From positions 62,001-126,000 of the forward strand of contig MCFE01000072.1 of assembly GCA_002104905.1 (NCBI GenBank): a DNA stretch of 64,000 bases, read 5' to 3'. The stretch comes from Basidiobolus meristosporus CBS 931.73 (taxonomy: Eukaryota > Fungi > Basidiobolomycota). How positions within the stretch are numbered: the first letter of the stretch is position 1; every line of letters begins with the position of its first letter. Made by a program: the position numbers and the translations under genes. This document shows positions 1-46,621 of the stretch, piece by piece. The notes under the pieces are model-generated. The model worked only from the letters and a program-made list of their open reading frames with translations, did no database searches and was not told where the DNA came from.

Positions 1-10
1 GGAATCTTAC

Positions 11-512
11 GTAGACACAGAGATGCCACCTGTACTGAGAACGGGATGTTCAAATCAGAGGCAGCATCAATGCAGCCAAAGTTGAAGACATCACACATCA
101 CAAAGTTTGGCTTTTCTTCAGCAAATATCCTTTTCAGCTGTTGATAGGAATAATCATAAGCTGTGTGCCACATTATCGCGACAACTTTCATGATATCCAT
201 GTGAGGGTCACTAATCAGCCTCTTTGATGCTTCCTTGATCTCCTCAACAGTTAGTGGCCCATCACCCATTGGTATTTTTCGCATCCCCCAAGGGTTCGCT
301 AAATCAAGAAATGGCGTGAAACTAGCAAAGCCCACTTCGTATCCACGTCGTTCTAATGCACTTGCAACTTGAAAAATAGGCTTCGCATGAGAGTATCCCC
401 CATAATGGGACGAGATGATGATTTTACCTGGCTGCCGCCAAGTCTCGTTAAATGAAACCTGGCCTGTGGCCAAAGAGATAAAAGATGGTAGAATAAGGAG
501 TGTAATTTTCAT
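11..512 (-). CDS. UDP-glycosyltransferase (GT1) paralog A, exon 1 only; the rest of the gene lies left of the window
   Basis: Manual translation from ATG at 512: MKITLLILPSFISLATGQVSFNETWRQPGK...GGYSHAKPIF...MCDVFNFGCIDAA. Ends at a phase-1 GTAAG donor at 10, the same position as in the other paralogs. Confidence 0.9.
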
Positions 513-552
513 ACTGTATGATTTGATTCTCCTATAGACATCATACGCATAC

Positions 553-559
553 TTATATA
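553..559 (-). promoter_or_regulatory. TATA box of UGT-A
   Basis: TATATAA 41 nt upstream of the ATG; position conserved across paralogs. Confidence 0.6.
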
Positions 560-1563
560 GTAAAAATTGCAGTGTAGAGAATCATCTTTTGGTCCAAAGA
601 CCCTCATCTACGAATAGTTCAATCTGATAAGGATGGGTGCACAAAGAATCTGATAACTCGCTGTACATTATTTCCATCTGATAATTTTGAAGTACACTAC
701 ATATCGCTTGTGGTACTACTTTTACTTAAACTCCCCCCATCAATCGTCTTACTCAACATGTATCATCATACTTAATGCAATCAATAAAGCTCTGTATATC
801 CGCTAGAACGGAAAAACTGTCAACAAACATACAACATGAATATTAGTGTACACTTCATTGTTAACTCTGAGTCATTTCAAATGCGGTGTCAGCCAGTACA
901 ACGAAGATTCAGATATAGAAGTATTTCTCGCATACCAAACATCACTCCAATATATCCCCAAAGGAATGAACTAGACAGCATGTGGTAACTGCGGAGCGTC
1001 TAGTTTATGTTTATGATGTCCTTTAAACTCAGCGAACAGGTTCAAGTCATTGCATATGCTCGTGTGTGATGATCATTACCAAATACGGCCTCGATTTCCA
1101 AAATAGGATAGAGAAGGTGTTGTGTGGCAGCCAGGCTATACTTTCGAAGATGAGATGGATGGGTCAAGTATATATGCTCCTGTACCGAGCCAGTTTATGA
1201 AGCCCTTTATTAAATTGGTTTCTCCGCAGTTGATATTTCAGCTTGCGAATTCAGTCCAATGAAGCCCTAGTCTAGATAATCATACACAATACCTGATGTC
1301 GACCCTGTCTTGTTTTGTTGGGACCAATTAGGTCTTGGCCACAAATCCACCACTTCGATCATTTGTTATTGTTAAATTATTAAGCCCTCTGATCAGAAGT
1401 TATTTGCGATTTATTTATAGCCTATTTTAGATGACAATTCTAAAGGTAGGGTGTGGATAGATGGTTACATGCTACTTGTCATAAATGTGCATTTATCTTC
1501 AACTAATTATAATTTAAGTTGGCTGCAAAGCCCTTCATATCAATTTGTCAAACGAAGTTACCT

Positions 1564-3342
1564 TCATAACGTCTTAACTTTTGTGGATTTTACAGTAGGG
1601 TTGGTAACATCAATAGCCATCTGACTCAACTTGAATAATCCATATGATAGTAAACTTGAGATGATGATTAATATCAAGTAGATATCCAAGTCACATTGTT
1701 GCCAGAGCGTCCATCTAGACTCCGGAGATTGGTGGATGCTCTTCATGGGGTCATCCGTCTTCCCGGCATATATCATCTGCTCAGCAATATCGGCCGCATA
1801 CTGAATCCGTTTGGAGTTGATTTGGGCCAGAAGCTGCATGCGATGTACATTCCTTGCGAAGTGGCCGTCTTTATCCTCAAGCAGTAGCCTGGTTTTCTCC
1901 ATCATCTCAGGGACGCTGAAGGTGGTGAGCTCCATGGGAATAGAGACTCCGGCAGACTGAAGGTTGGCAGCATTGTAAAAGTGATCCCCGAAAGTTGGTA
2001 TGTTGAGCACCCTGGTTCCAGTCACCAATGCTTCATTTGAGCTATCCAGACCCCCATGAGAAACAAATAGCACAGTGCTTGGGTGGGAAAGAATGGAGAA
2101 TTGGGGTGCGAAATCAAGGATCCTGATATCCTCATGTTGATTCTTCAGGATTTGTTCAACCTGGATGGTGGCATTGTTGACACGTATCTCTTCAGGGAAC
2201 TCTTCGGTGGCTGATGCGGAGAGAGGCCAGATGGCACCATCGATGACTTTGTCCTCGAGCAACTGCAACACACTAGTCAGGATTTTGGTGATGGTGGATC
2301 TTTCAAGTTGCGCGACGGTGCCGAATGCGATGTACACCACCTTTTGACGAGAGTCAAGGAATGTCTGCAACTCGGGCGTCAATGCTGGGTACTCGGATGA
2401 GAGCAGAGGCCCAACAAGGTGAACATTCGGTGGCAAGATCTTGGGTTTCTATGAACAATGGGTTAGATCATGAGCATGAGTCTGAAGTAAGTGACATGGA
2501 GATTCTCAGTCAAAACTTACATCGATACCGAAGAAGCTGTTGACAAACATGACTCCCTTGTCAATGTTGTTGAAGCCGAACTCTTTCCGGGCCTGTGCCC
2601 CAACCTTGACTCGCTCTCTGTTTGCTATCCGTGCAAAGCGCCAGTTTTTCCAGAGATACATCAAGCGACGCTTGAAATTACGATTGAACCGGCTAACGAT
2701 CCCCGAATCCATGGCAGCGGATCCAACATCCAATGAGCTGGTTATGGTATCTGAAATTGAGTGCACTATTGAGAATGATTGAGACCGTTTGTTAGTGACA
2801 GGCTAGCACGTATGCGAATTGGAGGGAGACCTACATATTCCTAATGAAGGGAGTTGTACAGTAAATGGAATGCCCAAATCGTGAGCTGCATCAATACAAC
2901 CAAAGTTGAAAACATCACACATCACAAGGCCTGGCTTGCCGTCAGCCAGAATTCTTGAAAGCTGCTTATACGAGTGCTTATATGATAGCTCCCACATGAA
3001 TGTGATGATTGTAAAGATACTACTGTTACCAGGTTCGCGAATACGTTTCCTTACAAGCTGCTTGTACTGTTTCAATGTTACAGGTCCATCCCCAATAGAG
3101 ATTCTTTCAAAGCCCCAAGGTTTTGCCAAGTTTACGAAGGGAGTGAAGCTGATGAAGCTTACTTCATGTCCGCGCTCTTTCAAAACATTGGCGATCTGGA
3201 ATATAGGTTTTGCGTGAGAATATCCTCCGTAGTCAGAAGCGATCAAGATTTTGCTTGGTTGCCGCCATGTCTCATTGAACACAAGATGGCCCGTCACGAG
3301 AGTGACGAGAGAAGATAGAAAATTTAATGGATAAAGCTTCAT
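1564..3342 (-). CDS. UDP-glycosyltransferase paralog B, intact, about 545 aa; exons 3342-2835, 2765-2521, 2448-1564
   Basis: GT..AG introns of 69 and 72 nt give a continuous frame. Signal peptide, catalytic His (GGYSH) and Asp (CDVF), UGT signature FAPQ..HGGLDSSNEAL..GDH, C-terminal TM helix and KVKTL tail. Confidence 0.93.
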
Positions 3343-3382
3343 ATTTTCTGTGTGAATCTCCTTCAAACGATTAACATTGCTC

Positions 3383-3389
3383 TTAAATA
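3383..3389 (-). promoter_or_regulatory. TATA-like box of UGT-B
   Basis: TATTTAA 41 nt upstream of ATG 3342. Confidence 0.5.
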
Positions 3390-4859
3390 TCCCAACATGA
3401 AGCAATATTGGTTCCTTCCAACCCTTTAGATTTCACACCGTTGACGATCTGAATACACTTCGTGTCACAAAGATAGACAGCGAGTATGCTTGGATGATCT
3501 ATCCCATTCGACCAATAGATTTTACACCCAAATATTAGTTTAATGACTTCATCGTCAATTACCCCAGTAACCAAGTGCTAGAATATGCCGCCCCAACCGC
3601 GAGAACGGAGAATCAATCGGCGCGCATGATGCTTTACAAATTTGTATTAGCTGTTGGAGGCTATTCGCTGGTACAGCAATATTCTTAAAGCACGGAGCAG
3701 AAAACTCGCTTGCTTATTATAGTATGATGATCCTGAGTAGCCCAGCAATTTCAGATTGATTGCGGAGTGTATCAACGTCAACCATCGCTGCTCGGCGCAT
3801 GTTAAGGCCGAAGAATCGTGGTGATGGTGTAGATGACGATCGATGGCCAAATATAACCAAGATGACTTAGTGTACCAGGGCACGCTACTTTCAATCGCTT
3901 GATTGGAAATGTAATGATGTGATGGCTAGTGTATTCCAAATGATATCGCGATTTTGGCTTTAGCTGCTTCATACCATGTACCACCATTAATATGATTCTA
4001 TGTAGCTAAGCCCTTGCGGTATTTCACCCGAATTAGCCGGAAACGTATGGACGAATGAAATGCATGCTGTCAGCACATACACCAGTAGAGGCCCCATTCT
4101 TTCTCTTATCACTGCAATTCCCGATTTCGAAGGTCCTGAGTTGTAACAAGAGACTGGGGCCAGGCTCTTCTCGTTGATGATGTGTTCAACGAATTAATGA
4201 AGATCACTTGTAAGCAACAACTTCTACAAACACCATGCTGTTTGCACAACCAAACCAGATATTGGATGTGGTGACAATCATTCAAGGATGCAAAGAATGC
4301 TGTGGTTAATCTTAGTCATCTGTTCTTTCATGACAAGGTGATTCATCAATGCCCTTTATAGATCCACTTGCTTTCATAGCATAATGTCATTTATATGGCA
4401 ATATCCGCAGCATACTGATCTGAGTACATTGATGGCAATATGGATAGAGTAGGTGTTTATTTTGAATTGGACCCAGGGTATTCACACGTAGGGTTGTTTT
4501 CGCTTGGCAGTTTATTGCTAAACAACGAACTACTCCAACATTTGGCAGCATCATTCCAGGTATAGAAAGGTGCAGATCATAAGATGTGTACAAAATCTGG
4601 GGATGTTTGGAACTGAAGAATTAGCACAATACGAGCACCATTGGAGCAAGTAGAAAACCATAATATAATATAAGGATACAAAAGTTTAGTAATGGTTTTG
4701 AGTTTTTGCAATAAAGAATCCTCTATTGATATGATACATCCTTTGCAGCTAGTTGTAACGCATGAGCAATCATGCCCAATATTATTTACAGTATGTGACA
4801 ATAAGGTTGGATTGTGTATTTCATTGCAACAAAGACTTCATTGTGCTGGTCTGTATACA

Positions 4860-6170
4860 AATTCCCAATAGTTTGGTTTTGGTAGGCTGAACAGGTGGGT
4901 TAATGGCACCAGCAACCCATCCGGCCAACTTGAATGCTATATAGAATATTGAAGCAGAGCAAACAACCAACATCAGGTAGGTATCCAAGTAATACTGCTT
5001 TCAAAGTAGCAATCTGGACTCAGGTGATTGGTAGATACTCTTCATAGGATCATCTGCATCTCCAGCATAGATCATCTGCTCGGCAATGTCAGCTACTTGC
5101 TCAGTTCGTTTAGAGTTGATTTGGGCCAAGAGTTGCATATGACGCAGATTCCTTGCAAATTTACCATCCTTATCCTCAAGTAGTTGTCGAACTTTTTTTA
5201 TTCATTTCTGACACGGAAAATGTGCCCACTCTCATAAATACCGATACACCGGAGGCTTCGAGATTAGCAACATTATGGAAGTGGTCACCAAAGGCTGGAA
5301 TATTCAATATTTTTATGCCAGTTACCAGTGCCTCATTAGAGCTATCCAAGCCACCGTGTGGTTTCTGAATACTAACTGCTAGATTCCACGACCTGATTCA
5401 TGATAAAATGCCAATGTAGCTTGCATTCATACAGATAAAAACTATTCACAAAAACAACATCTTTGTCCACATTGCTGAACCAGAACTCTTCTTGGACCCG
5501 TGAATCGAGTTAAAACCGATCCTTATCCACAACTTGTGCAAAGAGCCAGCTTTTCCAAAGTGAAGTCAAACGGTGTTTGAAGTTACCACTAAATCGACCA
5601 ATGAAACTAGAATCTACACTTGTAGCTCTATTGTCCAAAGCCGCGGAAACGGTATCATATATTGAGTGTACTGAGTATTCAATTTGACAGAATTACCTTC
5701 AAATAGACGAAAAAAGGAGTATTCGAGAGATTTGCATACATCCAGTGATGGTACTGGTACAGAGAATGGAATACTGGGATTGTAAGCTACATCAGCACAG
5801 GCAAAATTGAAGATGTCCCACATCACAGAACTCTGCTGTTCTTCCGCGAAAATCATTGTTGGTTGCTGATAGGTATAAGAGTATGTGACCTTCCACATCA
5901 TGAAGACAACTATGAGGATGTTTTCCCCATCAGGATCTCGCATGAGCTCGTTTAACTTCTCCATTGTTAAAGGCCTATTCACCATGGAAATCCTGGCAAA
6001 TCCACGAATGGTGTAGAACTGACGAAGCCAACATCGTATCCACGTTTCTTGAGAAAATTGGCTTTGCATGGGAATATCTTCCGCAATGAGAAGAGATCAA
6101 TATCTTCCTTGATTCTCGCCAAGTCTCATTGAATAATGCCTAACTGGAAAGCAGCCATAAGAGAAGGCAT
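4860..6170 (-). pseudogene. UGT pseudogene C
   Basis: Recognisable FNETW..SHAKPIF, exon 2 remnant with an in-frame TAA, and HGGLDSSNEAL..GDH..QSPESR. Deletions in exon 1 and the first half of exon 3, plus frameshifts and a TGA replacing a Trp codon. Confidence 0.88.
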
Positions 6171-6448
6171 GGTGGGAAATCCCAAAGCCTAATGCTACCT
6201 TATTCGAGGGAATACTCCTACTTATTTAAACTCAACCTGACTCCATGATGCAAATCGGCTATACATACAACTAGATCAACTATCCTAATATGGTCGAAAT
6301 TTCTTGTTCATTTGATGTAACAATTCGATCCATTGAAAGGTATTGAAAATTCCCAATTAAATAGAATTAGTTTCTGAATGAGCGATCATCACGGCCTCGG
6401 TAGATTCTTAATGGTTATGTGGCCTTGATGAATACTCCTATTATATAT

Positions 6449-8217
6449 TTATAGTTTTTTGACCTTCGCTGATTGATTCGCAAGGATGCAAAGTCTTCGG
6501 AGTGACCTGTACGTCAAGTAAGGTAAAGAAACACCGGCACCGATCAATATCAGGTAGATATCCAAGTCGTATCTCTTCCACAACACTAATCTAGATTCGG
6601 GGGATTGATAGATGCTCGTCATGGGCTCATCAGGTTTACCAGCATAGATCAACTGCTCCACGACATCCGCAGCGTAGTGAATTCGTTTGGAACTGATTTG
6701 AGCCAAAACCTGCATGCGACGTAGGTTACTCGCAAACTGGCCACCTTTATCCTCGAGTAGCAATTTGGCCTTGTCGGTCATTTCTGAGGAGGTGAAGGTG
6801 GTGATCTCCATTGGGATGGAAACCCCGCAGGACTGGAGGTTCACAGCATTGTAGAAATGGTCACCGAATGCTGGGATGTTCAGTATTTTTGTGGCAGTTA
6901 CCAGTGCCTCGTTAGAGCTATCCAAGCCACCGTGTGAAACAAATAGGACGGTGTTGGGGTGCGAGAGGATGGAAAATTGGGGGGCAAAATCAAGCATTCT
7001 GAAACTCGCATCTTGGTTCTTCAGGATGGGTTCAGTTGGAATGGTGGCAGTGGTGGTGGTGGTGGTGGTGGTATTATTGTTGATCAGTATTTCTTTGGGG
7101 AACTCCTCAATGGATGATGCGGAAATGGGCCAGATGACTCCATCAATCGCTTTGTCATGAAGCAGCTGGGACACGCTGGTCAGTATTCTCTCGATAGTGG
7201 ATTGCTCGAGTTGCATGTGAGTGCCGAAAGCGATATAGACCACCCTCGGATGTGAGTCAAGGAAGGCCTTCAAGTCAGGGGTCAGTGGCGGATACTCGGG
7301 CGAAAGCAAAGGCCCAACGAGGTGAACATTGGGCGGTAGATACTTTGGTTTCTGAATCGTAGCGGTTAGATATTGGGTCACAGACAAGTGTACAGTATTA
7401 TGGTGACTTACATCGACTCCAAAGAAGCTGTTCACAAATATCACCCCTTTGTCCATATTATTATATCCAAACTCTTGTCTCGCCACTGATCCAACCTTGA
7501 TTCGATCCTGGTTTGCCTTCCGGGAAAAGCACCAATTGCTCCACAAGAAGCGGAAACGACGCCTAAAGTTGCGATTGAATCGACTTAGGATTCCTGTATC
7601 CGTATCGGCGGATCTTTTATCCAAGGAGTCAGTGACAGTATCTGTTACTGAGTGCACTATAGTAAAAGGTGTTAGGCTTGTGTAGCGACTTGATTCGTGA
7701 TGGACTTACTGAGGCCCAGCGAAGGAAGTTGAACTGAGAAAGGGATATTCAAGTGATAGGCAGCATCAATACACCCGAAGTTAAATACGTCACACATGAC
7801 AAAGCTAGGTTTCTCCTCAGTAAGAATCCTCGTCAGCTGTCTATAGGAGGACTCATAAGTGATATCCCACATGATCGTGACTATCTTCATGATGCTATCC
7901 CTATCAGAATTTCGAGTAGCTTCTTTCATAATCTCCTTGTACTCTTTCATGGGTAAAGACCCCTCTCCCATAGACAATCTGTTAAATCCCCAAGGTTTCG
8001 CCAAATCTAAGAACGGCGTAAAGCTGGCAAAGCTGACTTCATACCCACGTTGTTTCAGCACATGGCCGATCTGTAGGATTGGTTTTGCATGGGAATATCC
8101 GCCATAATGGGATGAAATCAGTACCTTCTTTGGTTGTCGCCAGGTTTCATCGAACAAAAATTGGCCAGCTACCAGAGAAATGAGATAGGGTAAAGTGAGC
8201 AATGAATAAGCCTTCAT
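6449..8217 (-). CDS. UDP-glycosyltransferase paralog D, intact, about 551 aa; exons 8217-7710, 7656-7412, 7351-6449
   Basis: Introns of 53 and 60 nt at the conserved positions. All motifs are present; carries a poly-Thr insertion; tail KVKKL. Confidence 0.93.
7050..7072. repeat. (GTG/ACC)7 coding microsatellite giving poly-Thr
   Basis: gtggtggtggtggtggtggtggt, translated on the minus strand within NNNTTTTTTTTATIP. Confidence 0.9.
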
Positions 8218-8259
8218 GCTGCTCGATTCAATCTCTGGGGGAATCTAACCAGTTTGCTC

Positions 8260-8266
8260 TTATATA
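8260..8266 (-). promoter_or_regulatory. TATA box of UGT-D
   Basis: TATATAA 43 nt upstream of the ATG. Confidence 0.6.
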
Positions 8267-9129
8267 TCTACAAGTGCCAAATGTAAATTCTCTATTTGTG
8301 CCACATGTAGTCAACACCACGGAATGTAAACCTCAAGCATGTGCTATCGAAAATTATGCGGATCAGTTGTTTATGCCTATTTTTGGGTATCTGTCGCTCG
8401 TCACATCGACAATGGCCCTTGGCACTGACAGCGATGCATTAGCACATGGGTAGCTTCATGGGCGAATGGGGCTTCTACTGCTCAAAGAATGCAGCAAATG
8501 CTGCTAGCACGCGATTTCGAAGCGTCAGACTTTTATATATAACTGTCTGATACGCCTTACCAAGAGTCAAAATCCTTTCTAGACATCGGGGTTGCGAATT
8601 GATTTTTCCAGTAGCAAAGCCCTACGGATCACGTTTACGAGTACCGCACTACGTGAAAGTTAGCATTGATTGTGTAAAAAGATGTAAAGAACAGTCATGA
8701 TGGATACCAACTGCAGGCGCGATAAATAATAGTCATTTGATTTGCTCAGGGTTGACTGCATGTCAAACGTGCATATAGATTATCATCTTGATTGCGCCGT
8801 TATATAAAAACGCATTATGCTTGCTTACGACAGAAGTTGGAATTGCAAGTTGAAAGCCAGAAGCCCGAGTTTGCGTGCCATAGATCGAGTTATATGAATC
8901 CGTTATATGCCTTCGGCTTGAAACTGTTGCCACTCAATAGCACTAACCGAACATCATTAACGGATTGCGGGTAGAATTGCCAGTGTTTGCTTTGCTTTGC
9001 GCATTTACGGCCGCAAATCCATTTCTTCTCATATCGATTACTACTGGACTACTTTCAAATTGTTGCATATTTCATTGTTGTATAAGTCCATGTATTTAGA
9101 AGCAAGGCCCTAATCTGGTTCCGATTAAC

Positions 9130-9395
9130 TTATCTTGACTTTGATAGCCCTATGTAGGCAAACCATTCGGCCAGCCTCAGTGATATGTATAGAAGAGTTG
9201 ATGTGGAGCTAGCCAAGAGTAAATAAAGATCATAATCCAACTGTGTCCAGAGTTGTAGCCTATCAGGGGTTTGGTAAGTACTCTTCAATTGCTTGGCAAG
9301 ATCAGCAGCATATTGTATCCATTTAGAAGTTATCTGAACCAATGTTTGCAAGGGTTGTACATTGCTGGTTTAGCGTGGTCTTTTGGAACATTGAA
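9130..9395 (-). pseudogene. UGT 3-prime relic (C-terminal about 80 codons)
   Basis: QITSKWIQYAADLAKQL..YQTP..LYLLLASS aligns with QINSKRIQYAADVAEQM..YQSP..IYLI; no upstream exons found. Confidence 0.8.
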
Positions 9396-9638
9396 TTGAT
9401 GAAGGCTTTTATTTTCTTTGGGGGGGAGGGTGATATACTAGTCGTTTGAAGGTTTAAAGTGGGGTAAAAATAATGACCATAGACAGGGATATTCCGGTCA
9501 GAGGTACCTCGTTGGAGCTGAGCAAATCTTCATGGCTCACCGGAATTCTATATCGCTTTATTTATACTTCAAAAAGAGCTGATTGCCAAGAATAAATTCA
9601 GTAGCTGTAAATACAGAGCCCACAAGATATATCTCCAC

Positions 9639-11403
9639 TCACAGTATTTTGGTTTTGGTGGCGAGAGTATACGAGTTACTGGTATCAATAAACCATTGAA
9701 CTACTTTAAAGATTGAATAGAATAATAACGAAGCGGTGGATGCCAATATCATGTATATATCAGCATCCCACCGTTTCCAGAATGGCCATCTGGATTCAGG
9801 TGATTGGTAGATGCTCTTCATCGGATCCTCGGTTTTGCCAGCATAGAGCATTTGTTCGGCAACATCTGCAGCATATTGAATCCGTCTGGAGTTGATCTGG
9901 GCAAGTATCTGCATGCGGCGCACATTGCTGGCGAACTGGCCATCCTTGTCTTCGAGAAGTAGCTTGGCCTTCTCAACCATTTCTCGTGATGGTGAAGGTG
10001 GTGATTTCCATCGGGATGGACACCCCAGATGTTTGCAGATTAGCAGCATTGTAGAAATGATCTCCAAAGGTAGGGATGTTCAACACCCTCGTTCCAGTCA
10101 AGAGCGCCTCATTGGAGCTGTCCAGGCCACCATGAGAGACGAATAGCACGGTACTAGGATGGGAGAGTACGGAGAACTGGGGTGCAAAGTTGAGAATTCG
10201 GACATTTTCATGCTGATTCTTGAGGATGGGATCCACTGGGATGGTGGCATTGTTGATGTATACTTCATCCGGGAACTCCTCGATGGCTGAAGCGGAGATG
10301 GGCCAGATCACCCCATCAATAGCTCCATCGTCGAGCAGCTGCAATACGCTAGTCAGTATGTTAACTATTGTGGGCTGTTGAAGCTGCATGATTGTGCCGA
10401 AGGCTATGTATGCCACTCGTTTACGAGGGTTTAGGAATTCCTCCAGGTCAGGAGTCAGAGGAGGATACTCGGGGGAAAGCAAGGGCCCAACAAGGTGAAC
10501 ATTGGGTGGTAGATTCTTTGGTTTCTGAGGGTTGGTGGTGAGATGTTAGGTCGGGGACAGCTATGCAATACCAAGGCAACTTACATCGATTCCAAAGAAG
10601 CTGTTCACAAAGATCACACCCTTATCGATGTTGTTGAATCCAAACTCTTGTCGCGCCACTGATCCTGCCGTGATCCGATCCTTGTTTGCCAGCTGTGCAA
10701 ATCGCCAGTTATTCCACAGGTATTCTAATCTGTGCTTGAAGTTACGATTGAACCGGGTAATAATTCCAGAGTCAGCAGCAACAGTTCCAATGTCCAACGA
10801 GTTGGTAATGCTGTCGGATATGGAGTGCACTGGACAGAGTGGAGAGAGTTAGTCGCTACGAGGTGGTGCATGTGTCAAACTATTGGTAGGCTTACATATC
10901 CCTAATGAAGGCATCTGCATGGAGAATGGAATACGCAAAGAATGCGCGGCATCGATGCATCCAAAGTTGAAGACATCGCACATCACAAAGCTTGGTTTTT
11001 CCTCAGAAAAGATCCGGGTGAGCTGTTGATAGGAAGGGATGTATGCCAATTGCCAGAATACTGCGACGGCTGTAACGATGTTCTTCCTGTCGTGATCTCG
11101 AGTGGCATTTTTCATCGTTTCTTTGATCTGATCGGCGGTCAATGGCCCGTCACCCATGGTGATTCTCCTGAAACCCCATGGCTTGGCTAAATCTATGAAC
11201 GGCGTGAAACTGGCATAGCTCACTTCGTAGCCCCGCTGCTTGAGAACACTGGCGATTTGAAAAATCGGCTTTGCATGGGAGTATCCACCGAAGTGTGACG
11301 AGATGATGATTTTTCCTGGCTGTCGCCAAGTCTCGTTGAGCAGTGAATGACCTGATGCCATTGCGAGCAGCACTGATAGGACAAGAGATATAATGAACGT
11401 CAT
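9639..11403 (-). CDS. UGT paralog E; exons 11403-10896, 10829-10585, 10524-9639; one +1 frameshift near 9985 (likely consensus error, otherwise a pseudogene)
   Basis: Splice sites conserved (66- and 60-nt introns). Exon 3 is 886 nt versus 885 in intact paralogs; tail KTKIL. Confidence 0.8.
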
Positions 11404-11441
11404 GGTGTTGATGATGAGGTTGATCTCGATTTAAGCTGGTC

Positions 11442-11448
11442 TTTTATA
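11442..11448 (-). promoter_or_regulatory. TATA box of UGT-E
   Basis: TATAAAA 39 nt upstream of the ATG. Confidence 0.6.
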
Positions 11449-11899
11449 CCCTCGAAGCTAGGAGGGCCTGGCTGCACGTTATTGCGTACTCGCCCGGAAT
11501 AGCAAGCTGCCTTCATCATACTTTGTGCCATGTGTAAATGGGCTATACATTTGTTAGAGCTCTCTATCTAAACGAGGATTATATTAAGAATATGCAGCAA
11601 CTGCAGCATGAATTCAGTACACCTTTAGTCATAATTAGTGCTCACCTGGGCATGTGCGATAGGGGCTTTAGTGCCTGAGCGTAAAAATAATCAAATGGCA
11701 CTAGGATTTTCCGAACAATTATTAATGAATAACCCCATGGACATTGCTGAGCCCTGGAAAAAACCTGTAATTATTAGATGGTGTCGGTCTTCATAAAGAT
11801 GAATAGGAGAGACCAACAGATGGACCATGTTAGTGTCTTGACCCGCGATTTCTACAGTATTTTGCCTTGATAATTAACAACAATAGCAAGCTAATAAGA

Positions 11900-12262
11900 G
11901 GATATGGATAGTAAGATTAATTAATCAAGTCGAAAGTCACACTTCCATTGTGGATTCAGCGGTTGACGAACGCCCTTCATCGGTCTTTGGGCTTTACAGA
12001 CATAACGCATCTGCTCGGAAACATTCGCAGTATACTGAATTCATTTTGAGTTGATCAGCGACTTCTTTTGTAAGTAACTCTGAGAAATGTGGGGTGAATA
12101 CTTGCAGAACATAAGATTCAGTAAGGCGAACATTGGGCAAGGGTTTCTTCACAGATCACCCCCTTAACTACATTGTCGTCAAGTCACCCATTTGTCATCG
12201 GTTGAGTAACAGGTAGTTAAAGCTGCAACTGAATCCAAAGAATCGGTAACAATAAGCACGGA
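11900..12262 (-). pseudogene. Heavily deleted UGT relic
   Basis: Minus-strand fragments VTDSLDS, DNVVKGVI, LPNVRL and IQYTANVSEQMRY..PMKGVRQP match exon 2 and exon 3 motifs in order, with large deletions. Confidence 0.7.
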
Positions 12263-12737
12263 ATAGAATACGATTTTTACCAAAGTTCAATTGCTATAGA
12301 ATTTTGCGTTCTCTACGTATTGTGTCATATGCAGATAGGGAGAGCTCCGTTCTCGTATGTGATATGTGGATAAGGAATGTTTGTATCGCACATGTATTGA
12401 GCTAGTAGTGAGCACCCAAATGGATTAATACAATGCAAACTCAGGCCATTACCCTTGCCCTGAAACAGACGAGCCACTATCATGCCCATGTGGGGGTTTT
12501 CGCGGTGGAGGAGTCCTACTTCAAATCCGTGATGATATAATCAAATCCATATTTGCTATATATATATATTCACCGTCATGCTGTATGTTCGAAATGGTCA
12601 TTTATTTATGAAATCTGGGTTGTGAGGAATTTCTGGGGCATATCCTGTATTAATCTGAGCACGTTGCAGTTGATTTGGATAAAAATACACATCACTGATC
12701 GCGTAAGATGAGGTGGAGTTGATTTTGGGGCTGCTGC

Positions 12738-14505
12738 TCAAACCAATTTTACCTTGGTGGGTTGTATTGTAGGATTGGTAGCATTAACAAACCACTGAGC
12801 TGACTTGAAAAAGATGCAGAATAATGCTGCACTGATACTGCCCATGATCAAGTAGATATCACAGTCATACCGCTTCCAGAATGGCCATCTGGATTCAGGT
12901 GATTGGTAGATGCTCTTCATCGGATCCTCGGTTTTACCAGCGATAGACCATTTGTTCGGCAACATCTGCAGCATATTGAATCCGTTTGGAGTTGATCTGG
13001 GCAAGTATCTGCATGCGGCGCACATTGCTGGCGAACTGGCCATCCTTGTCTTCGAGAAGTAGCTTAGCCTTCTCAACCATTTCCTGTGATGGTGAAGGTG
13101 GTGATTTCCATCGGGATGGACACCCCAGATGTTTGCAGATTAGCAGCATTGTAGAAATGATCTCCAAAGGTAGGGATGTTCAACACCCTCGTTCCAGTCA
13201 AGAGCGCCTCATTGGAGCTGTCCAGGCCACCATGAGAGACGAATAGCACGGTACTAGGGTGGGAGAGTACGGAGAACTGGGGTGCGAAGTTGAGAATTCG
13301 GACATTTTCATGCTGATTCTTGAGGATGGGATCCACTGGGATGGTGGCATTGCTGATGTATACTTCATCCGGGAACTCCTCGATGGCTGAAGCGGAGATG
13401 GGCCAGATCACCCCATCAATAGCTCCATCGTCGAGCAGCTGCAATACGCTAGTCAGTATGTTAACTATTGTGGGCTGCTGAAGCTGCATGTATTGTGCCG
13501 AAGGCTAATGTATGCCACTCGTTTACGAGGGTTTAGGAATTCCTCCAGGTCAGGAGTCAGAGGAGGATACTCGGGGGAAAGCAAGGGCCCAACAAGGTGA
13601 ACATTGGGTGGTAGATTCTTTGGTTTCTGAGGGTTGGTGGTGAGATGTTAGGTCAGGGACAGCTATGCAATACTAAGGCAACTTACATCGATTCCAAAGA
13701 AGCTGTTCACAAAGATCACACCCTTATCGATGTTGTTGAATCCAAACTCTTGTCGCGCCACTGATCCTGCCTTGATCCGATCCTTGTTTGCCAGCTGTGC
13801 AAATCGCCAGTTGTTCCACAGGTATTCTAATCTGTGCTTGAAGTTACGATTGAACCGGGTAATAATTCCAGAGTCAGCAGCAACAGTTCCAATGTCCAAC
13901 GAGTTGGTAATGCTGTCGGATATGGAGTGCACTAGACAGAGTGGAGAGAGTTAGTCGCTACGAGGTGGTGCATGTGTCAAACTATTGGCAGGCTTACATA
14001 TCCCTAATGAAGGCATTTGTATTGAGAATGGGATACGTAAATGATGGGCAGCATCGATGCATCCAAAGTTGAAGACATCGCACATCACAAAGCTTGGTTT
14101 TTCCTCAGAAAAGATCCGGGTGAGCTGTCGATAGGAAGGGATGTATGCCAATTGCCAGAGTACTGCAACAGCTGTAACGATGCTCTTTCTGTCGTGATCT
14201 CGAGTGGCATTTTTCATCGTTTCTTTGATCTGATCGGCGGTCAATGGCCCGTCACCCATGGCGATTCTCCTGAAACCCCATGGCTTGGCTAAATCCATGA
14301 ACGGCGTGAAACTGGCATAGCTCACTTCGTAGCCCCGCTGCTTGAGAACACTGGCGATTTGAAAAATCGGCTTTGCATGGGAGTATCCACCGAAGTGTGA
14401 CGAGATGATGATTTTTCCTGGCTGTCGCCAAGTCTCGTTGTGCAGTGAATGACCTGATGCCATTGCGAGCAGCACTGATAGGACAAGAGATATAATGAAC
14501 GTCAT
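12738..14505 (-). CDS. UGT paralog F (near-identical to E); exons 14505-13998, 13931-13687, 13626-12738; four +1 insertions in exon 3 (errors or pseudogene)
   Basis: Exon 3 is 889 nt (885+4), with extra bases near 13508, 13491, 13084 and 12922 relative to E/G; tail KVKLV. Confidence 0.72.
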
Positions 14506-14543
14506 GGTGTTGATGATGAGGTTGATCTCGATTTAAGCTGGTC

Positions 14544-14550
14544 TTTTATA
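14544..14550 (-). promoter_or_regulatory. TATA box of UGT-F
   Basis: TATAAAA 39 nt upstream of the ATG. Confidence 0.6.
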
Positions 14551-15810
14551 CCCTCGAAGCTAGGAGGGTCCTGGCTGCACGTTATTGCGTACTCGCCCGG
14601 AGTAGCAAGCTGCCTCCGCCGTACTTTGTGCCATGTGTAAAATGGGCTATACTTGTGTCAGAGCTCCTTATCTGAGCTTTAGGCACTTTTACTGCCAATG
14701 GTTTTACTGTGTGCGATAGTAGAGATAGCGCTTGAAATATCACAATGGATTAGTAATCAGCAACCTCACACCCACGCATAGTGTTTAGTCTTGAAACAGA
14801 GTACAGAAAGAATGCGGTTTACGTACAATTTATTTTGTGCTTTCGTGATGAATAGGTGCTTACAATTTAGCCCAGGGATCAGTTTTGAATTTCGTGTCGG
14901 CCAGTCACGAAAAAGAAGTCCACATTGAAACCTCAATTTTGGAGGCTGACCAAAGGAGATTTTTGGTTGCGGGTTCCTCTCTCTAAATAGGTGATGTATT
15001 GCTGGGTAGGGCGTTGATCATATACATACAACACCATCTTTTGCCGATTATGGGAACAATACTAGTAATAGACGGGTCCAGATGAAAGGAAACGTGGAGC
15101 CGGGTAACCTCATATTTCTTAGATTACGGAAGTAATCACCTGAATGTATTGATAACATGGCAGATGCTTTTGCAACAGCCCTGAGACAGGCATGCTATTT
15201 TTAGATGGAACCTAGTTGGGAACAAATTTTATAAGGGTGAAAATCCTTGTGTAGATTTCTAAAGAGATGAATAAGGGGTTTGCTTTGTATCCTACGGCGG
15301 TGTGATAACCACCCCACAGGTTGATGTTCACAATTGCTATGGTCAAGGCGTATTTACGTTTTCACTGGTAATAGTGCAAACGTTTCTATATTATACGGCT
15401 AGTGAATTATAGAGATTTTGATTATACATTTGTACATGCATATAACCAAGTACTCATAGTACTAGGAATCAAGCAGATTTAGATGCATTGGAAGTCACTT
15501 CTTAAATACTTAATAAGAATGGAATACAAAATATTAACAAGCACAAGAAACCGTATTACCTAGACTGTTACTGATTGCTTTTTAATGCTAAATAAGTCAT
15601 CAAATGTACTTCAGACCTGCACATGAGACGATGGGGCTAAACGGTGTTGCCGGGTTGGCTTAAACGCAAAGGTGTATTTATCGAAGATACAGCGGAGTTT
15701 GTGAGGAGTATGCCGTACTGATTATATTACTCAACGAAGAGACTACTGATATTACAAGTACATAACATGGATTACCATAGGGAAAGTCCATGGTACTTTT
15801 ACATCAAGAA

Positions 15811-17572
15811 TCATAGTATTTTTACCTTGGTGGATTGGGCTGATAAGTTAATCGTATTAGCAAGCCACTGTACTGATTTGAACAGCGCATAGAATAGCGA
15901 CGCGCAGAAACTAGTTATTATCAAATAGATGTCACAGTCATACCGCTTCCAGAATGGCCATCTGGATTCAGGTGATTGGTAGATGCTCTTCATCGGATCC
16001 TCGGTTTTACCAGCATAGAGCATTTGTTCGGCAACATCTGCAGCATACTGAATCCGTTTGGAGTTGATCTGGGCAAGTATTTGCATGCGGCGCACATTAC
16101 TGGCGAACTGGCCATCCTTGTCTTCGAGAAGTAGCTTGACCTTCTCAACCATTTCTGTGATGGTGAAGGTGGTGATTTCCATCGGGATGGACACCCCAGA
16201 TGATTGCAAATTAGCAGCATTATAGAAGTGGTCACCGAAAGATGGGATGTTCAGTATTCTTTTACCAGTTAACAATGCCTCATTGGAGCTGTCCAAACCA
16301 GCGTGTGAGACGAAGAGCATGGTATGCGGATGGGAGAGTATGGAGAACTGGGGTGCAAAGCCAAGGATTCGGAAGTCTTCGTGTTGGTTTTTGAGGATTG
16401 ATTCGGTTGCTATGGTCACATTGTTGACAATGATTTCACTTGGAAATTCTTCAGTATCCGATGAGGCAACTGGCCAAATAACTCCGTCAATTACATTGTC
16501 GTGAAGCAAATGTACAACTCCCGTCAGTATCTTGGTTATTGTTGCTTGCTGAAGTTGCATGTGGGTACCAAATGCGATGTAGACAACCCGCTGATGAGTG
16601 TTGAGGAAGTTTTCCAGATCGGGTGTCAAAGAAGGGTACTCAGGGGAGAGCAAAGGCCCTACCAGATGAACATTGGGTGGCAGGGTTTTCGGTTTCTAGA
16701 CATGGTTGGAATAAATTTAGGGATCAAGCAATGCCATCATATGCTGGTGGGCTTACGTCGATTCCGAAGAAGCTATTCACAAAGATCACACCCTTATCTA
16801 TGTTGTTGAAGCCAAACTCTTGTCGAGCCACTGATCCTGCCTTGATCCGGTCCTTGTTTGTCAGTTGTGAAAATTGCCAGTTCTTCCATAGATATTGTAT
16901 GCGGCGCCTGAAATTCCGATTAAACCGGTGAAAAATTCCGGAATCTGCGGTTACAGTTCCAATATCCAGTGAGCTGGTAACCACATCAGATATGGCGTGC
17001 ACTAAATCAAATAGTGAGCATGAATCATCAGGAGTAGCACATTCCCCTAGATGCTAAGACTTACGGATCCCCAAGGAAGGCACTTGCACAGAGTACGGAA
17101 TCTGTAAATCATAAGCAGCGTCGATACACCCGAAGTTGAAGACGTCGCACATCACAAAGCTAGGATCCTCTTGAGCAAATATTTTCTTCAACCGCTCATA
17201 CGTGTAGCCGTATGCTGCTTGCCACATTGTTGTGACAATCGTTAGTATGCTTTCTCTATCAGGGTTACGGGTAGCTTCAGTCATAGCTGCTTTGAGCTCT
17301 TCCAGAGTCAACGGGCCCTCGCCCATAGAGATGCTCTCGAATCCCCATGGCTTCGCTAAATCCACAAACGATGAGAAACTGACGTAGCCAACTTCGTAGC
17401 CTCGTTGCTTGAGAATGCTTGCTATTTGAAGAATGGGCTTCGCATGTGAGTATCCACCGTAGTGGGACGAAACCAAAATCTTTCGTGGCTGTCTCCAGGT
17501 CTCGTTGAGCAGCGTCTGACCAGATGCAAGTGCAATCAAGGACGATAGAGTGAGGAGTATGAATCGTTTCAT
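15811..17572 (-). CDS. UGT paralog G, intact, about 545 aa; exons 17572-17065, 17001-16757, 16695-15811
   Basis: Introns of 63 and 61 nt; all motifs present (HAGLDS variant); tail KVKIL. Confidence 0.93.
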
Positions 17573-20389: not shown

Positions 20390-21250
20390 AATATACTGTG
20401 CATTGATAAGTATCCTAGCTATTTTACCTACAGTGCTGTTTTCTCCTATATATAACTTTCCTCTGTATTTACCAGCCAATATCATGAATCTCTTCAGATA
20501 TCCAAACACATGCTCTACCCTCACTCTGAAATGTTAAATATCTCATTGTAGAGCTTCTGCTTCCTGCTTAGCACACCATTCCTTGGCTTCCCATATGCTG
20601 TAATACATTGTAATCTCTGACAATCCTCTCCTATATAAGCTAAGTCTGACATACATTTCTTGCCTCTACTGAATTCTGGATGATTCTCTACCTAGAGTGC
20701 TTTGTCATGCCTACTTCCAGCAAATGGCCCACTAAACCAGATGATGTTACTCTCAATGTCAGACAGCGCTTGAAACTTCACACAGTGTGCCTTGTACTTG
20801 CCAGAACAAAAGTGTCTCTGCCCTCTGGAAGGTCTGTTGATACTGACTGGGAAGGTATCTAAAATACTCCTTATATGGAACCTATTGCTGAACACTCTGG
20901 GATATGGAAGTCTATTGGAACTTATGAACCTAGTATTCCAAGCTTGCTCTAAGTCATTCATACCCTCTGCAAGGTGATTCTCCATTGCTGTCAGCTGGGA
21001 GTGAAAGCTTCTAGGACTTTTGTTGCCATGGATGATGCGGGATGAAACCTTGTGGGGCAATACTTCTTGTAATAACAGAGAAGCTTACCAAGGGATCTCC
21101 TTGAGTAGATTGGGGTAGATGGTCCACAGTACTTGGTATAGATCTCCACTAGTATGTCAAAAGAAATCCAGTGGTAGTGATGGGATTGATGAGAAAAGAC
21201 CATTCAGATGAGTAAGTCATGTTAAAATTGGTAGGTGATCCAAGCTGAGA
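20390..21250 (-). pseudogene. PHIS (Harbinger/ISL2EU/Pangu-type) DDE transposase remnant
   Basis: ILDTFPVSINRPSRGQRHFCSGKYKAHCVKFQ..GPFAGSRHD..SDLAYIG..KLYNEIF..RVRVEHVFGYLKRF matches DDE_Tnp_4-type motifs; stops and frameshifts present. Confidence 0.82.
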
Positions 21251-21855: not shown

Positions 21856-22788
21856 ATGCCAGTGGATATATATAAGAAGATATATAAAAAAACAAGTATT
21901 GAAATCAAGAATGAGCTGAGAGTGAGGGGATTTGATGAGGAAGCCTTGCTGGAACAATTTTGCGTGCAATTTGCACAGTACAGGCTAGACTTGTCCGTTT
22001 GTGCCTCAACTCTGGGAACCAAAGAGATCTTGAATGAATTTTTGCCTCAAATGACTAATTTGTTACATAATATATTGGTAGAGCAAAGTGGCTTCCAAGA
22101 GCAATATACACAGGACTCATCCAGGCAACAGTTCCAAATTATCAGACAGTGGATAAGTGAATACCTTGAGGAATCAGAAGGTGAGATTCAAGAAGAAGAA
22201 TACAGACCACAAGCAACAGCATCTAGGTTGTGCCAGCACTCTTTGCTGGACTCCTTACCATCCCTTGCAACCTCAGTGCACCCTGCACATGTCAGCTCAA
22301 ACTATGCCAACACCCTTCACAAGAGTGCCCTGCATCAACTCAATGTGTGTTGGGTCAACAACATGCTTCAGAGCAAAACCACCAGAACTTGCCAAACTGC
22401 TCATATAGACACAAGTCCATTGGAGCAGGCCAAATTGGGTCATCAAGTGCCTCCACCACAAGAGCCTTTGGCAAGTAAAAGAACGCCTCAGCATGTAACA
22501 CTGCAGGCCGGTTCAGTAGCATCATCCAGAGCAATTAAGCATGGCCAAGCTGCAGCATTGCACTCATCAACTAGGAGGCAAAATACTGACTATAAATACA
22601 CAAGTAGCCAGGAGGATAGTCAACAAGGAAGTAGTTTAGGTGTCCCTATGAAAAATCTCAAGCTTGGAATTCATCTGATTTTTAGCTGGTACTCTGCTGG
22701 TATTCTAATGATACTTTGCTGGTATTCAGCTGGTGTTTTGGGCTCCATACTTCAAATGCAATTTTTGATGGAATTAATGGGCAGCTAA
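21856..22788 (+). CDS. Putative second ORF of the PHIS element (310-aa open frame, function unknown)
   Basis: Divergent from the transposase; a decayed homologue sits at about 58700-59880 (-) in the same arrangement. Confidence 0.45.
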   Translation: MPVDIYKKIYKKTSIEIKNELRVRGFDEEALLEQFCVQFAQYRLDLSVCASTLGTKEILNEFLPQMTNLLHNILVEQSGFQEQYTQDSSRQQFQIIRQWISEYLEESEGEIQEEEYRPQATASRLCQHSLLDSLPSLATSVHPAHVSSNYANTLHKSALHQLNVCWVNNMLQSKTTRTCQTAHIDTSPLEQAKLGHQVPPPQEPLASKRTPQHVTLQAGSVASSRAIKHGQAAALHSSTRRQNTDYKYTSSQEDSQQGSSLGVPMKNLKLGIHLIFSWYSAGILMILCWYSAGVLGSILQMQFLMELMGS

Positions 22789-35943: not shown

Positions 35944-37959
35944 ATTATATCTGCCACCATTTTGTCCATTAGACACTAATTCTCCAATTCACCTCCAATA
36001 TATCTCTCTAATATTTCAACAAAACCAACTCTACTAAGCTATTTTCCACAGCTCCCCTTGCAAAGTGGTGTTGTATATCTATGTGGTTGGTTCTGGCATG
36101 ATTAGTAGGATTCCTAGCAAATAAAATACAACTTTGATCATCTTTGTAATTACAGGTTGGGTCATCTGAACCAAAGCCTAAGTCTTTGAATAACATCTGT
36201 AGCTTTATAGTCTCCTTAGTTGCTTGAGAAGCAGCCATGTATTCAGCTTCTGTTGTAGATAGGGCCACAGTTGGTTGTTTCTTGCAATTCCAAGTAAAAG
36301 CTGCACTGGCATAAAGAAATACCTACCCAGTGGTAGAGCTTTGGTCAATCAGATCTCTACCCCAATCTTAATCACTATAAACATCATATATTTGCTTATT
36401 AGCTGCTCCAGAGTATTCCTGTACCATATTTATAGTACCTTGTAGATATCTGAAAATCTGCTTAACTACTGTGATTTGATCTGATCCATAACTTTGCATG
36501 AGTTGACTGACTATTCTAGCTGCCACTGTAACATCAGACATGTTGACACCATCAAGTACATCAGGCTACCATCCCATGATTGATATGGAAGGTTTGGTCC
36601 ATATGAGCCATTTTCACCTAAAACTGGCTGAGATTTGCTCAATTTTAGATTATTGTCCATAGGGGTGGCCACAGGCTTGCAATTTTGCATATTGAGGCAC
36701 CTAAGAGTATCCCTGATGTACTTAGACCAATTCAGCACAATTTTTTGTGTAGGTATGTTAAAATTCACTTCAATTCCAAGAAAATAGCTCAATTTTTCAA
36801 GATCTTTCAACTCAATCTTGCTGAAGAGACCTCATTTTATCTGTTTAGGTGCCTCCTGGTCCCTTGTAGCTATTATTTGGTTGTCCATATTAAGAACTAG
36901 GATGATCACATTCTTTTTGAGCTGTTTCACATATATACTGTGATCTGCAGTGTGACAAATGAACCCAATACAGCTATTTCCTGAGTCCACACACCTTATG
37001 GGGGCCTTTGGATTGGTTAACCTTCTGGTTGCTCCATGTATATAGTTTCTTGCAAATCCTCATTGAGAAGGGCTGCTTTGATGTTCATTTGGTGTAGAAC
37101 TAGACTGTGAGCAGCTGCCAGGGCTAGAACTGTCCAGAAGGAGTTAAACTTGGCAACTGGAGCAAATGTTTGCTTGAAGTCTAGTCCCTTGATCTAGGAA
37201 TAGCCTTTGGCCACCAATCTAGCCTTGTATTTATCACCAGTACCATTTGATATTATGATGATCTTGTAGACCCATCTACATCCTATTGGCATTCTTCCAT
37301 TTGGTGAATCTACAAGTTCCTACATTTTTGCTTTGATCAGTGTTTGGTATTCCTCCTGCATGGCTTGTTGCCACGTAGTAGCATCTGGATTTTGCATTGC
37401 CTGTTCCAGATTCTGAGGCTCAGCACATAAGGCAAGCTAAGCTTCTTCATGATCTTTGGATGTCTGCCACCAGGATCCAGGGGAATTTCTTATTCTGGTA
37501 GATCTCCTAACTAGGATAATCTGCTCTGATCTGTAGCTGGTAGAATTGTCTTCCATATCTGGCTGAATTTGGTACATATCTTCTTCATTAGTGTTGATTG
37601 TGCCATCAGGCAGCTGGCCAATGATTTCTGTGGCTTTCTGATCAGCATTCTCCTCAAATACAACATCCATGCTCTTGATCAGCTTCTGAATTATGCCATT
37701 ATATGCTTTATACCCTTTAGTATCATCACAATACCCAAGAAAGATCCCTTTTCTACTCTTTGGTTTCAGCTTTAAGCGTTTTTTGTCAGCAATGTGATAA
37801 AAGCCACTGCTGCCAAAGATCATGAGGTGCTGGAGGTATGGTTTTTTGCCTCTATATGCTTCAAAGGGTGTAGATTTACGTAGTGCTGTTGTGGGCATCT
37901 ATTCTTGATGTATACCATGGTAGAAACAGGTTCAGCCCAAAACCTGTAGTCCATTCACT

Positions 37960-45400: not shown

Positions 45401-46621
45401 AATGAGATGGATGAAGATATCAAGAAGATAATCCGTGATGAAGCCAGCAAATTTGTTGTACAGGATGAAACACTCTACCAAATTGTTGATGGAAGCCTTA
45501 TTGCCTATTGTCCTTATGTTGCTCGCCTGGATTTAATGCATAAGCTACACAATGGATATGGACATCTTGGGATTGAAGGAACCTATAGCCTTGTGAAAGC
45601 CAGAGCATGGTGGCCCAGAATGAAACAAGATATTGAGAAGCTAGTGAAAACATGCCCAAACTGCCAAATCAATCAAGGCCAGCCACAAAGAATTACCAAA
45701 CTCTTCCCTTTGGAGCCTGTAACACCATTTGAGAGATGGGGGATTGACTTTATTGGAAGACTACCAACTACCAGGAAATGCAACCATTGGATCCAAGTAG
45801 CAATTGACCATGCCACTAAATGGCCAGTTGCTAAAGCTGTACCAATAGCCAGTGAACAAGAAGTTGCAAGTTTCATTTACCATGAGATCCTGATGAAGTT
45901 TGGATGCCCTGTGGAGATCTTATCCAATAGAGGTGCAAACTTTATGGCAAAGACATTAGAGGCTTACCTGGAAATGCAGCAGATCAGACACTTGAAAACC
46001 TTGGCATATCACCCCAGAACTAATGGAGTCACTGAGCGGTTTAATGGATTATTTGGAAAAATGCTGCCCAAGTATGCAAATGGAGTTGTCAGTAGATGGG
46101 ATGAGTATATAGACCAAGCACTCTTTGCATGCAGAGTCAGAGTACACAACACCACCCAGCAATCACCATTTTACTTAGTTTATGGATGTGAACCAAGAAT
46201 TCCAGGAGATCTCACACAACCAAAGCTTACAGACACCTTCGGAGATGAACTCAGTCAGCCAAGTAGACACCAGCAACTGGAACAAAGACGTCAAGAGGCA
46301 CAGACCAAAGTATCTCAAAGTGCAGAAAAGATGAAGCAGAGATTTGATAAGACTATAGCACCAGAAGCATTGACAGTTGGGAACTTTGTATTGCTAAGAA
46401 ACAACACTCGGAAGAAGTTTGAGCCACAATGGACAGGACCATTTAAGATCATCAGAGAATGTCCATTTGCAACTTACCAACTGGTGGACAAACAAGGTAA
46501 TATCCGGGAAGACTTAGTGCATAGGGACAGACTCAAGCTTGCAAGACTTGCTGACAATACTGAACCATCAAGATATTGGTATCACAAGAAAAGAGATTCA
46601 GGAGAACCCTCTCAACTTTAG
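42488..46621 (+). pseudogene. Single-frame gag-pol (CCHC knuckle, PR, RT, RNase H, IN with GPF) with two premature TAG stops
   Basis: In frame from ATG 42488; TAG at 42545 and 44546. [36 protein letters not shown]; second integrase Asp reads Asn. Confidence 0.93.

Follow-up and report, generated by a model that had tools for sequence, protein, structure and literature searches.

The closest described systems to the locus reported here are the membrane-anchored UDPGT proteins of Mucoromycota and Glomeromycota (Backusella, Mucor, Rhizopus, Cunninghamella and Rhizophagus), a multi-copy family of ~520-580 amino acids with a signal-like N-terminus, a family 1 glycosyltransferase (GT1) domain, a C-terminal helix and often a KxKxx or KKxx end. 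This family probably includes UGT58A1 and UGT59A1, phenolic UDP-glycosyltransferases (UGTs) of Mucorales that are predicted transmembrane proteins (PMC10334773). In addition, a 2026 survey reported that UGT8-like GT1 enzymes are multi-copy in Zoopago-, Mucoro- and Glomeromycota and were lost from Dikarya (PMC13161914). Here, we analyze a stretch of 64,000 nucleotides (nt) of Basidiobolus meristosporus CBS 931.73 (contig MCFE01000072.1, positions 62,001 to 126,000, forward strand), hereafter called the window, whose left end carries nine of the ten loci of a tandem UGT array. The array is best explained, probably though well short of certainly, as a lineage-specific set of GT-B fold, family 1 UDP-sugar glycosyltransferases that reside in the lumen of the endoplasmic reticulum (ER) and conjugate lipophilic acceptors. 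An earlier sequence-only reading of the same DNA had proposed GT1 enzymes from an early-diverging fungus, and the source organism agrees with this prediction. A base-by-base comparison of the first 10,512 nt of the window with contig MCFE01000072.1 (assembly GCA_002104905.1) showed no difference.

The Basidiobolus proteins align over their full length with those of Mucoromycota and Glomeromycota, but share only 27-33% identity with them along most of it, form a clade of their own, close the donor signature with GDH where those have GDQ and score 56-80 bits, against ~114 bits, in the Pfam comparison. With the animal ER UGTs (UGT1/UGT2, nematode, insect and UGT8/ceramide galactosyltransferase, CGT) they have in common the predicted type-I topology, the di-lysine end, the Pfam family, and tandem arrays with a variable acceptor half. 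However, sequence similarity to the animal enzymes lies mainly in the donor signature, the Caenorhabditis elegans UGT covering 14% of the query and the human UGT2B chains 85-90 residues, and diversity in Basidiobolus arose by whole-gene duplication and gene conversion, not by alternative first exons. Ascomycete members (Penicillium, lichen fungi, Pseudogymnoascus and others) are ~27-32% identical over most of their length and have the same C-terminal helix, whereas a signal peptide is found in 0 of 12 and the di-lysine end is missing in 11 of 12, so that their catalytic domain would face the cytosol. The soluble GT1 enzymes (spider-mite TuUGT202A2, OleD, YjiC and plant UGTs) resemble the array proteins in their GT-B fold (Foldseek E 4e-20 to 1e-16, TM-score by target ≤0.79), but are 13-18% identical and possess neither signal peptide nor membrane anchor nor retrieval motif.

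Family, fold and putative catalytic motifs

The Basidiobolus array proteins belong to the GT1 or UDPGT family, as had been proposed, which is borne out by Pfam matches as well as by a fold model. Exon 3 of copies A, D and E (Table 1) matched PF00201 (UDPGT) with 54-56 bits (E 5e-15 to 8e-14; gathering cut-off 19.5), while exons 1 and 2 searched alone gave no Pfam match. The full proteins of D, H and I scored 56-70 bits, likewise above the gathering score, compared with ~114 bits for Mucorales and Glomeromycota relatives and 160 bits for the C. elegans UGT. In these searches the exons of A and E were used by reference, and GenBank proteins served as full-length stand-ins for D, H and I. Modelled with AlphaFold2, copy D (protein P0001; predicted TM-score 0.75) takes on a two-domain GT-B fold. 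Foldseek comparison of this model with the PDB returned at least 500 matches at E≤0.001; the 39 matches listed were all GT-B glycosyltransferases, nearly all of them GT1, each with probability 1.0, and the best among those listed were the small-molecule GT1 enzymes spider-mite UGT202A2, OleD, CalG1, YjiC and plant UGTs. PDB matches found by sequence were limited to the donor signature (OleD, 2e-9; human UGT2B15, 5e-9).

This donor signature, FAPQFS.LSHP.T.LFVSHGGLDS.NEAL.TG...L..P.FGD[HQ], occurs in all copies; an approximate PROSITE-like pattern, which is not a strict test, matched H and I, not D. The signature ends in Gly-Asp-His in nine Basidiobolus sequences from both species (e.g. residues 413-416 of P0001; exon 3 of A-F and I), whereas copy H and the 37 further relatives whose motif was matched, among them the nematode enzyme, have Gly-Asp-Gln. 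In plant UGTs the residue at the end of the donor signature contacts the sugar, and a Gln-to-His exchange alters donor preference. His43 of P0001, in the motif GGYSH, and Asp143/Asp151 fall into alignment columns that are conserved across the fungal relatives. We infer by analogy that the His of this conserved GG-x-S-His loop and an Asp would form the catalytic pair. UDP-sugars would serve the enzymes as donors, the sugar being attached to a hydroxyl or comparable group of a lipophilic acceptor.

Predicted topology

Signal peptide and topology were called heuristically from Kyte-Doolittle hydropathy and the -3/-1 rule. Behind an initial Met-Lys or Met-Thr, each full-length copy has a hydrophobic stretch 10-12 residues long (Kyte-Doolittle 2.0-3.1); the residue at position 18-19, a Gln or His, is preceded by small residues at -3/-1, giving a predicted signal peptide of 17-18 residues. 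The signal-like segment recognized in the sequence-only reading is thus present, but slightly shorter by this heuristic than the 18-19 residues given there. The Asn-Glu-Thr sequon that the same reading placed in most copies indeed occurs four to six residues past the leader in A, B, C, E and H, D having Asp-Glu-Thr, and sequons near residues 22 and 343 are kept between species. Separately, we observed in exon 3 of copy D (window positions 7000-7050) an (ACC)n run that encodes the threonine run NNNTTTTTTTTAT, in the loop with the second conserved sequon.

Toward the C-terminus, a 19-residue hydropathy maximum of 1.4-2.6 starts 37-41 residues from the end, and the AlphaFold model of D contains a helix at residues 514-542. 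The tail behind it has 16-22 residues and ends in K-x-K-x-x, namely KVKIL (A), KVKLV (B), KTKIL (C), KVKKL (D) and KVKTL (E). All five of these ends had been read correctly before, although those of B and C are out of frame with the N-terminus. The Lys residues at -3 and -5 are invariant in A-E, H, I and three Basidiobolus ranarum proteins, in a stretch of anchor and tail that is otherwise 45% identical. Leader, helix and KxKxx end fit the suggested type-I, ER-retained topology, and by these simple rules the proteins are predicted to be retrieved by COPI. The proteins would enter the ER by means of a cleaved N-terminal signal peptide, after which the catalytic domain would face the lumen and the two conserved N-x-T/S sequons could be glycosylated there; a single C-terminal membrane helix would anchor the protein, and COPI retrieval through the cytosolic KxKxx end would keep it in the ER.

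Composition of the array and broken copies

Tblastn searches with GenBank proteins located nine UGT-like loci at window positions 1-17572, all on one strand, as the sequence-only reading had it, namely the minus strand. A tenth locus (copy I) lies past the left edge of the window, and half of the ten, namely A, D, E, H and I, are intact, each with its own TATA-like box. The claim of five complete copies within the window did not hold, since uninterrupted reading frames from ATG to stop are confined there to A, D and E, while B and C are frameshifted. In A-E, exons 1 and 2 measure 508 and 245 nt and end in phases 1 and 0, respectively, and the introns (53-72 nt) have GT..AG ends; copy I has the same exon/intron structure, and a B. 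ranarum orthologue carries introns at the same two positions and phases. Two identically placed introns had been ascribed to all nine loci. This can be shown for A-E, in both position and phase, but not for the others, as the donors of F are mutated, the introns of H lie beyond the window edge, and the two relics are short. Exon 1 of H, in addition, has a two-codon deletion.

GenBank holds entries for seven of the loci, ORY01234 to ORY01240, all labelled 'UDP-Glycosyltransferase/glycogen phosphorylase'. The models for A (ORY01240.1, last 305 amino acids) and E (ORY01236.1, 395 amino acids) are partial despite complete reading frames in the DNA. Protein P0004 is 100% identical to exon 3 of copy A (tblastn).

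Table 1. Features of the UGT array and of the remaining window (window positions; - and +, strand)
Feature	Position	Strand	Description
Copy H	512-1	-	exon 1 only (512-11) within the window; full gene = ORY01235.1 (P0003, 543 amino acids)
Exact ATCTGATAA sites (three)	622-684	+	upstream of copy H ATG at -118, -144 and -172
Copy E	3342-1564	-	intact, 545 codons
Copy F	6133-4923	-	dead pseudogene
Copy D	8217-6449	-	intact, 551 codons; = ORY01237.1 (P0001)
C-terminal UGT relic	9517-9166	-	matches amino acids 401-533, 38-41% identity; without KxKxx end
Copy C	11403-9639	-	full-length, single one-base insertion
C-terminal UGT relic	12055-11897	-	matches amino acids 459-514 of P0003, 41% identity (tblastn)
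Copy B	14505-12738	-	full-length, four one-base insertions in exon 3
Copy A	17572-15811	-	intact, 545 codons; exons 17572-17065, 17001-16757, 16695-15811; PF00201 match
Copy I	outside the window, next after H		intact, 545 amino acids
DDE_Tnp_4 fragment	20692-21060	-	PIF/Harbinger-type
310-residue open reading frame	21856-22788		no Pfam match
Copia-type SH3 fragment	37437-37898	-	
Ty3-type gag-pol	42581-46621	+	
Transposase_21 fragment	54543-55061	+	tnp2-type

The insertions in exon 3 of copy B (at ~13508, ~13491, ~13085 and ~12942) give premature stops, and the one in copy C (at ~9985) leads to a stop after ...TITRNG, ahead of the membrane helix; in both copies the helix and the KxKxx tail are consequently out of frame with the N-terminus. 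The third insertion of B and the sole insertion of C fall into the same alignment column, with a different base added. Copy C is a near-duplicate of B (96-99% identity across the first 1.6 kb), and the ratio of nonsynonymous to synonymous substitution (dN/dS) between them, 0.28-0.39, is based on few differences and does not decide whether they are pseudogenes. The assembly was built from PacBio reads (PMC7466969). Because it is a PacBio-only assembly and B and C are near-identical neighbours, their frameshifts may be either those of true pseudogenes or consensus errors; protein database searches for an independent sequence across the frameshifts returned no other B. meristosporus proteins, and the window is from the only assembly found. 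The GenBank models of both copies sidestep the breaks, either dropping ~60 conserved residues via unlikely introns or including a wrong-frame stretch. In the model of B (ORY01239.1, 405 amino acids), extra introns remove insertions one and two along with the bulk of the out-of-frame stretch, and the model ends out of frame past the fourth insertion; that of C is ORY01238.1 (476 amino acids). A rescue of B and C by such extra introns is not convincing, as the models lose conserved residues or misread the frame, and the AG nearby does not reframe C. Copy F, on the other hand, is certainly dead: both intron donors, at positions homologous to those of the other copies, are changed from GT to GC, exon 1 has three deletions, exon 3 has a deletion of ~420 nt, there is an in-frame stop, and the stop codon after KTKLL is lost.

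Evolution of the array

Identities and dN/dS values were computed from a local DNA alignment. Synonymous divergence (dS) between the old paralogues is saturated; where dS could be estimated, dN/dS was 0.08-0.17, so these paralogues are under purifying selection. Mean identity along the protein rises from 59% over residues 19-133 to 67-70% in exon 2 and 75-77% in the donor domain encoded by exon 3, and is 45% in anchor and tail. Copies E (2943-1713) and I (L001:12997-14227) share a tract of 1,231 nt with 98.6% identity, which starts inside exon 1 and spans both introns (100% and 98.6% identical), while the tract flanks are 55-76% identical and copy H sits between the two. Furthermore, A, B and C share a tract of ~300 nt near the 3' end with 94-97% identity. 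Both tracts are products of gene conversion, the one between E and I being recent. Given these conversion tracts, the variable unit is the first ~133 codons together with the anchor, not exon 1 as such. The diversified acceptor domains postulated in the sequence-only reading are recognizable as a more divergent N-terminal region, but do not coincide with exon 1. Overall, duplication, gene death and gene conversion shape the array, homogenizing the middle part while the first ~133 codons and the anchor stay variable.

Relatives and distribution of the architecture

Outside the genus, the nearest near-full-length matches are 27-33% identical and come from Mucorales, Glomeromycota and some Ascomycota. 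In a maximum-likelihood tree, four Basidiobolus proteins form one clade with support 99 among the fungal relatives; within it, both B. meristosporus copies join to the exclusion of the pair from B. ranarum, and the C. elegans branch is too long to place. A hydrophobic N-terminus, a C-terminal helix and Lys at -3/-5 are found in all five full-length Basidiobolus proteins. The di-lysine end is also present in Glomeromycota (6/6) and in half of the Mucorales relatives (11/22), most of which have the signal-like N-terminus and the helix as well, and the C. elegans UGT exhibits the same N-terminal segment, C-terminal helix and di-lysine features. Since Glomeromycota, about half of the Mucorales relatives and the nematode UGT share it, the architecture is not special to the array, and the 'animal-style' design is the common state of the UGT family in early-diverging fungi. 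That label thus suits the predicted topology but not the sequences, which fall inside a fungal family in the tree and are no closer to human UGT2B than to OleD. Among the ascomycete relatives (P0014, P0018-P0022, P0026, P0027, P0088-P0091), a signal peptide was predicted in 0/12, a di-lysine end in 1/12 and a C-terminal helix in 10/12, which suggests opposite membrane orientations within one family.

Transfer from animals or bacteria was also considered; the sequence-only reading had suggested a phylogenetic check for horizontal transfer. It received no support: fungi supply all of the nearest relatives, the Basidiobolus proteins form a monophyletic group among them, and the introns are shared with B. 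ranarum. The B. ranarum introns and the monophyly at support 99 instead point to vertical descent of the array genes.

UGT nomenclature places a protein in a family at about 40% or more amino-acid identity to a member. The best near-full-length identity outside Basidiobolus (33%) and the best among short fragments (37%) lie below this level, which speaks indirectly, by way of the proteins that the searches returned, against placement in the UGT58 or UGT59 family. The names UGT58A1 and UGT59A1 were absent from the protein search matches, and a literature search on fungal ER UGTs returned animal UGT papers only. The genes of the array are already in public records, and the presence and multiplicity of the family in fungi other than Dikarya are already reported.

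Genomic surroundings and promoter sites

To the left of copy I (L001:14678-18328) lie genes for a pyridoxal phosphate (PLP)-dependent aminotransferase and a glutamate decarboxylase (TIGR01788, 642 bits), followed by the proteasome lid subunit RPN5 and a PP2C phosphatase, a flank of ordinary primary metabolism. The PF00155 and PF00282 domains of the first two, which also occur in serine palmitoyltransferase and sphingosine-1-phosphate lyase, made us consider a sphingolipid gene neighbourhood, an idea rejected because the genes encode a generic PLP aminotransferase and the glutamate decarboxylase. On the other side, GenBank has no gene calls in the 10 kb right of A, and window positions 18000-64000 are gene-poor and transposon-rich. 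Searching for genes of a nonribosomal peptide synthetase (NRPS), a polyketide synthase (PKS), a terpene synthase or siderophore formation yielded none, either inside the window or within 10 kb left of it, in line with the earlier observation that the window lacks a biosynthetic core gene.

In addition to the three exact sites upstream of copy H (Table 1), copy I is preceded by one exact ATCTGATAA at -121 (L001:12477-12485) and one single-mismatch site at -90; no exact site occurs within 400 nt upstream of A-E. The motif matches the consensus of fungal GATA-type iron repressors, and an iron response may be confined to the two leftmost copies, H and I.

Acceptors and alternative explanations

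We favor small lipophilic acceptors, since phenolics are the substrates of the only characterized fungal relatives with a membrane anchor, small-molecule enzymes stand out as the best structural matches, and the array combines birth and death with a variable acceptor half, as is typical of conjugation enzymes. The copies would then be a set of enzymes with differing acceptors, e.g. for the conjugation of environmental or endogenous small molecules, and such conjugation is our best guess. Several points weigh against this picture. Signal peptide and topology were called from hydropathy and the -3/-1 rule, frameshifts break two of the seven full-length copies in the sole assembly found, and neither the acceptor class nor the sugar donor is legible from sequence; the GDH end, as opposed to GDQ, is a lead that the sugar donor may differ from that of the relatives. 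A serious rival, although on balance an unlikely one, is that the acceptors are membrane lipids of the ceramide or sterol-like kind, glycosylated in the ER lumen as by animal UGT8/CGT, with a role in membrane remodelling and not in conjugating foreign compounds. CGT is also a type-I protein with a di-lysine end, which counts for this proposal, as do an arthropod '2-hydroxyacylsphingosine galactosyltransferase-like' cluster at rank 7 of an Atlas feature search and the GDH at the sugar-contact position, which could suit a non-glucose donor such as UDP-galactose if the lead from plant UGTs is followed. The 2026 survey moreover labels such proteins UGT8/ceramide-galactosyltransferase-like, a label that suggests lipid acceptors and likewise counts against our interpretation, yet this assignment is based on the Pfam domain, with no assay; its supplement, in which the family column was not legible, lists five accessions of the array, ORY01234, ORY01235, ORY01237, ORY01239 and ORY01240 (PMC13161914). 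However, an array of ten loci with gene death and a variable N-terminal region would be unusual for a housekeeping lipid enzyme, its neighbours are a glutamate decarboxylase and a generic PLP aminotransferase with no sphingolipid enzymes among them, and phenolics are the acceptors of the only fungal relatives with a membrane anchor that have been characterized (PMC10334773).

We give little credence to the proposal that some of the copies tailor an endogenous metabolite, e.g. an iron-linked one, instead of serving xenobiotic defence. It could draw on the richness of Basidiobolus in secondary-metabolite genes (PMC7466969). The exact ATCTGATAA motif stands 90-172 nt before the ATG of H (three sites) and I (one site) only, and fits the iron-repressor consensus, but it is a putative site that is missing upstream of A-E, and the window and the 10 kb to its left are devoid of NRPS, PKS, terpene synthase and siderophore genes. 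Very improbable, finally, is a mostly decaying array in which even the copies that look intact are functionless at present. Half of its ten loci are broken or fragmentary, and the array adjoins a transposon-rich, gene-poor stretch; on the other hand, dN/dS between the intact paralogues is 0.08-0.17 where dS is estimable, motifs, introns and the KxKxx end are kept in B. ranarum, and a TATA-like box is found at every intact copy.

Implications for Basidiobolus and the UGT family

By itself, the array adds a diverged clade to an already reported family. A bolder interpretation, which we regard as distinctly unlikely at present, is that Basidiobolus holds a separate UGT family whose donor was changed by a clade-wide Gln-to-His exchange and whose acceptors were diversified in a cassette-like manner, and further that a lumenal, COPI-retrieved UGT system is ancestral to opisthokonts and was turned cytosolic in ascomycetes by loss of the signal peptide. 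If this is true, gene conversion would preserve a common donor core and leave variation to the first ~133 codons and the anchor, and this cassette scheme would be the counterpart, by conversion, of the shared exons of vertebrate UGT1A. The early-diverging members with signal peptide and di-lysine end, set against the ascomycete members without them, offer a testable case of topology change within an enzyme family.

Returning to the reading that we prefer, of ER-lumenal enzymes conjugating small lipophilic acceptors, Basidiobolus would, if the enzymes are active, hold a small battery of conjugating enzymes in the ER lumen, with a possible use as promiscuous biocatalysts like the phenolic UGTs of Mucorales. 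Basidiobolus lives in the guts of amphibians and reptiles and on insect remains, and such enzymes could shape how the fungus handles host, dietary and bacterial compounds.

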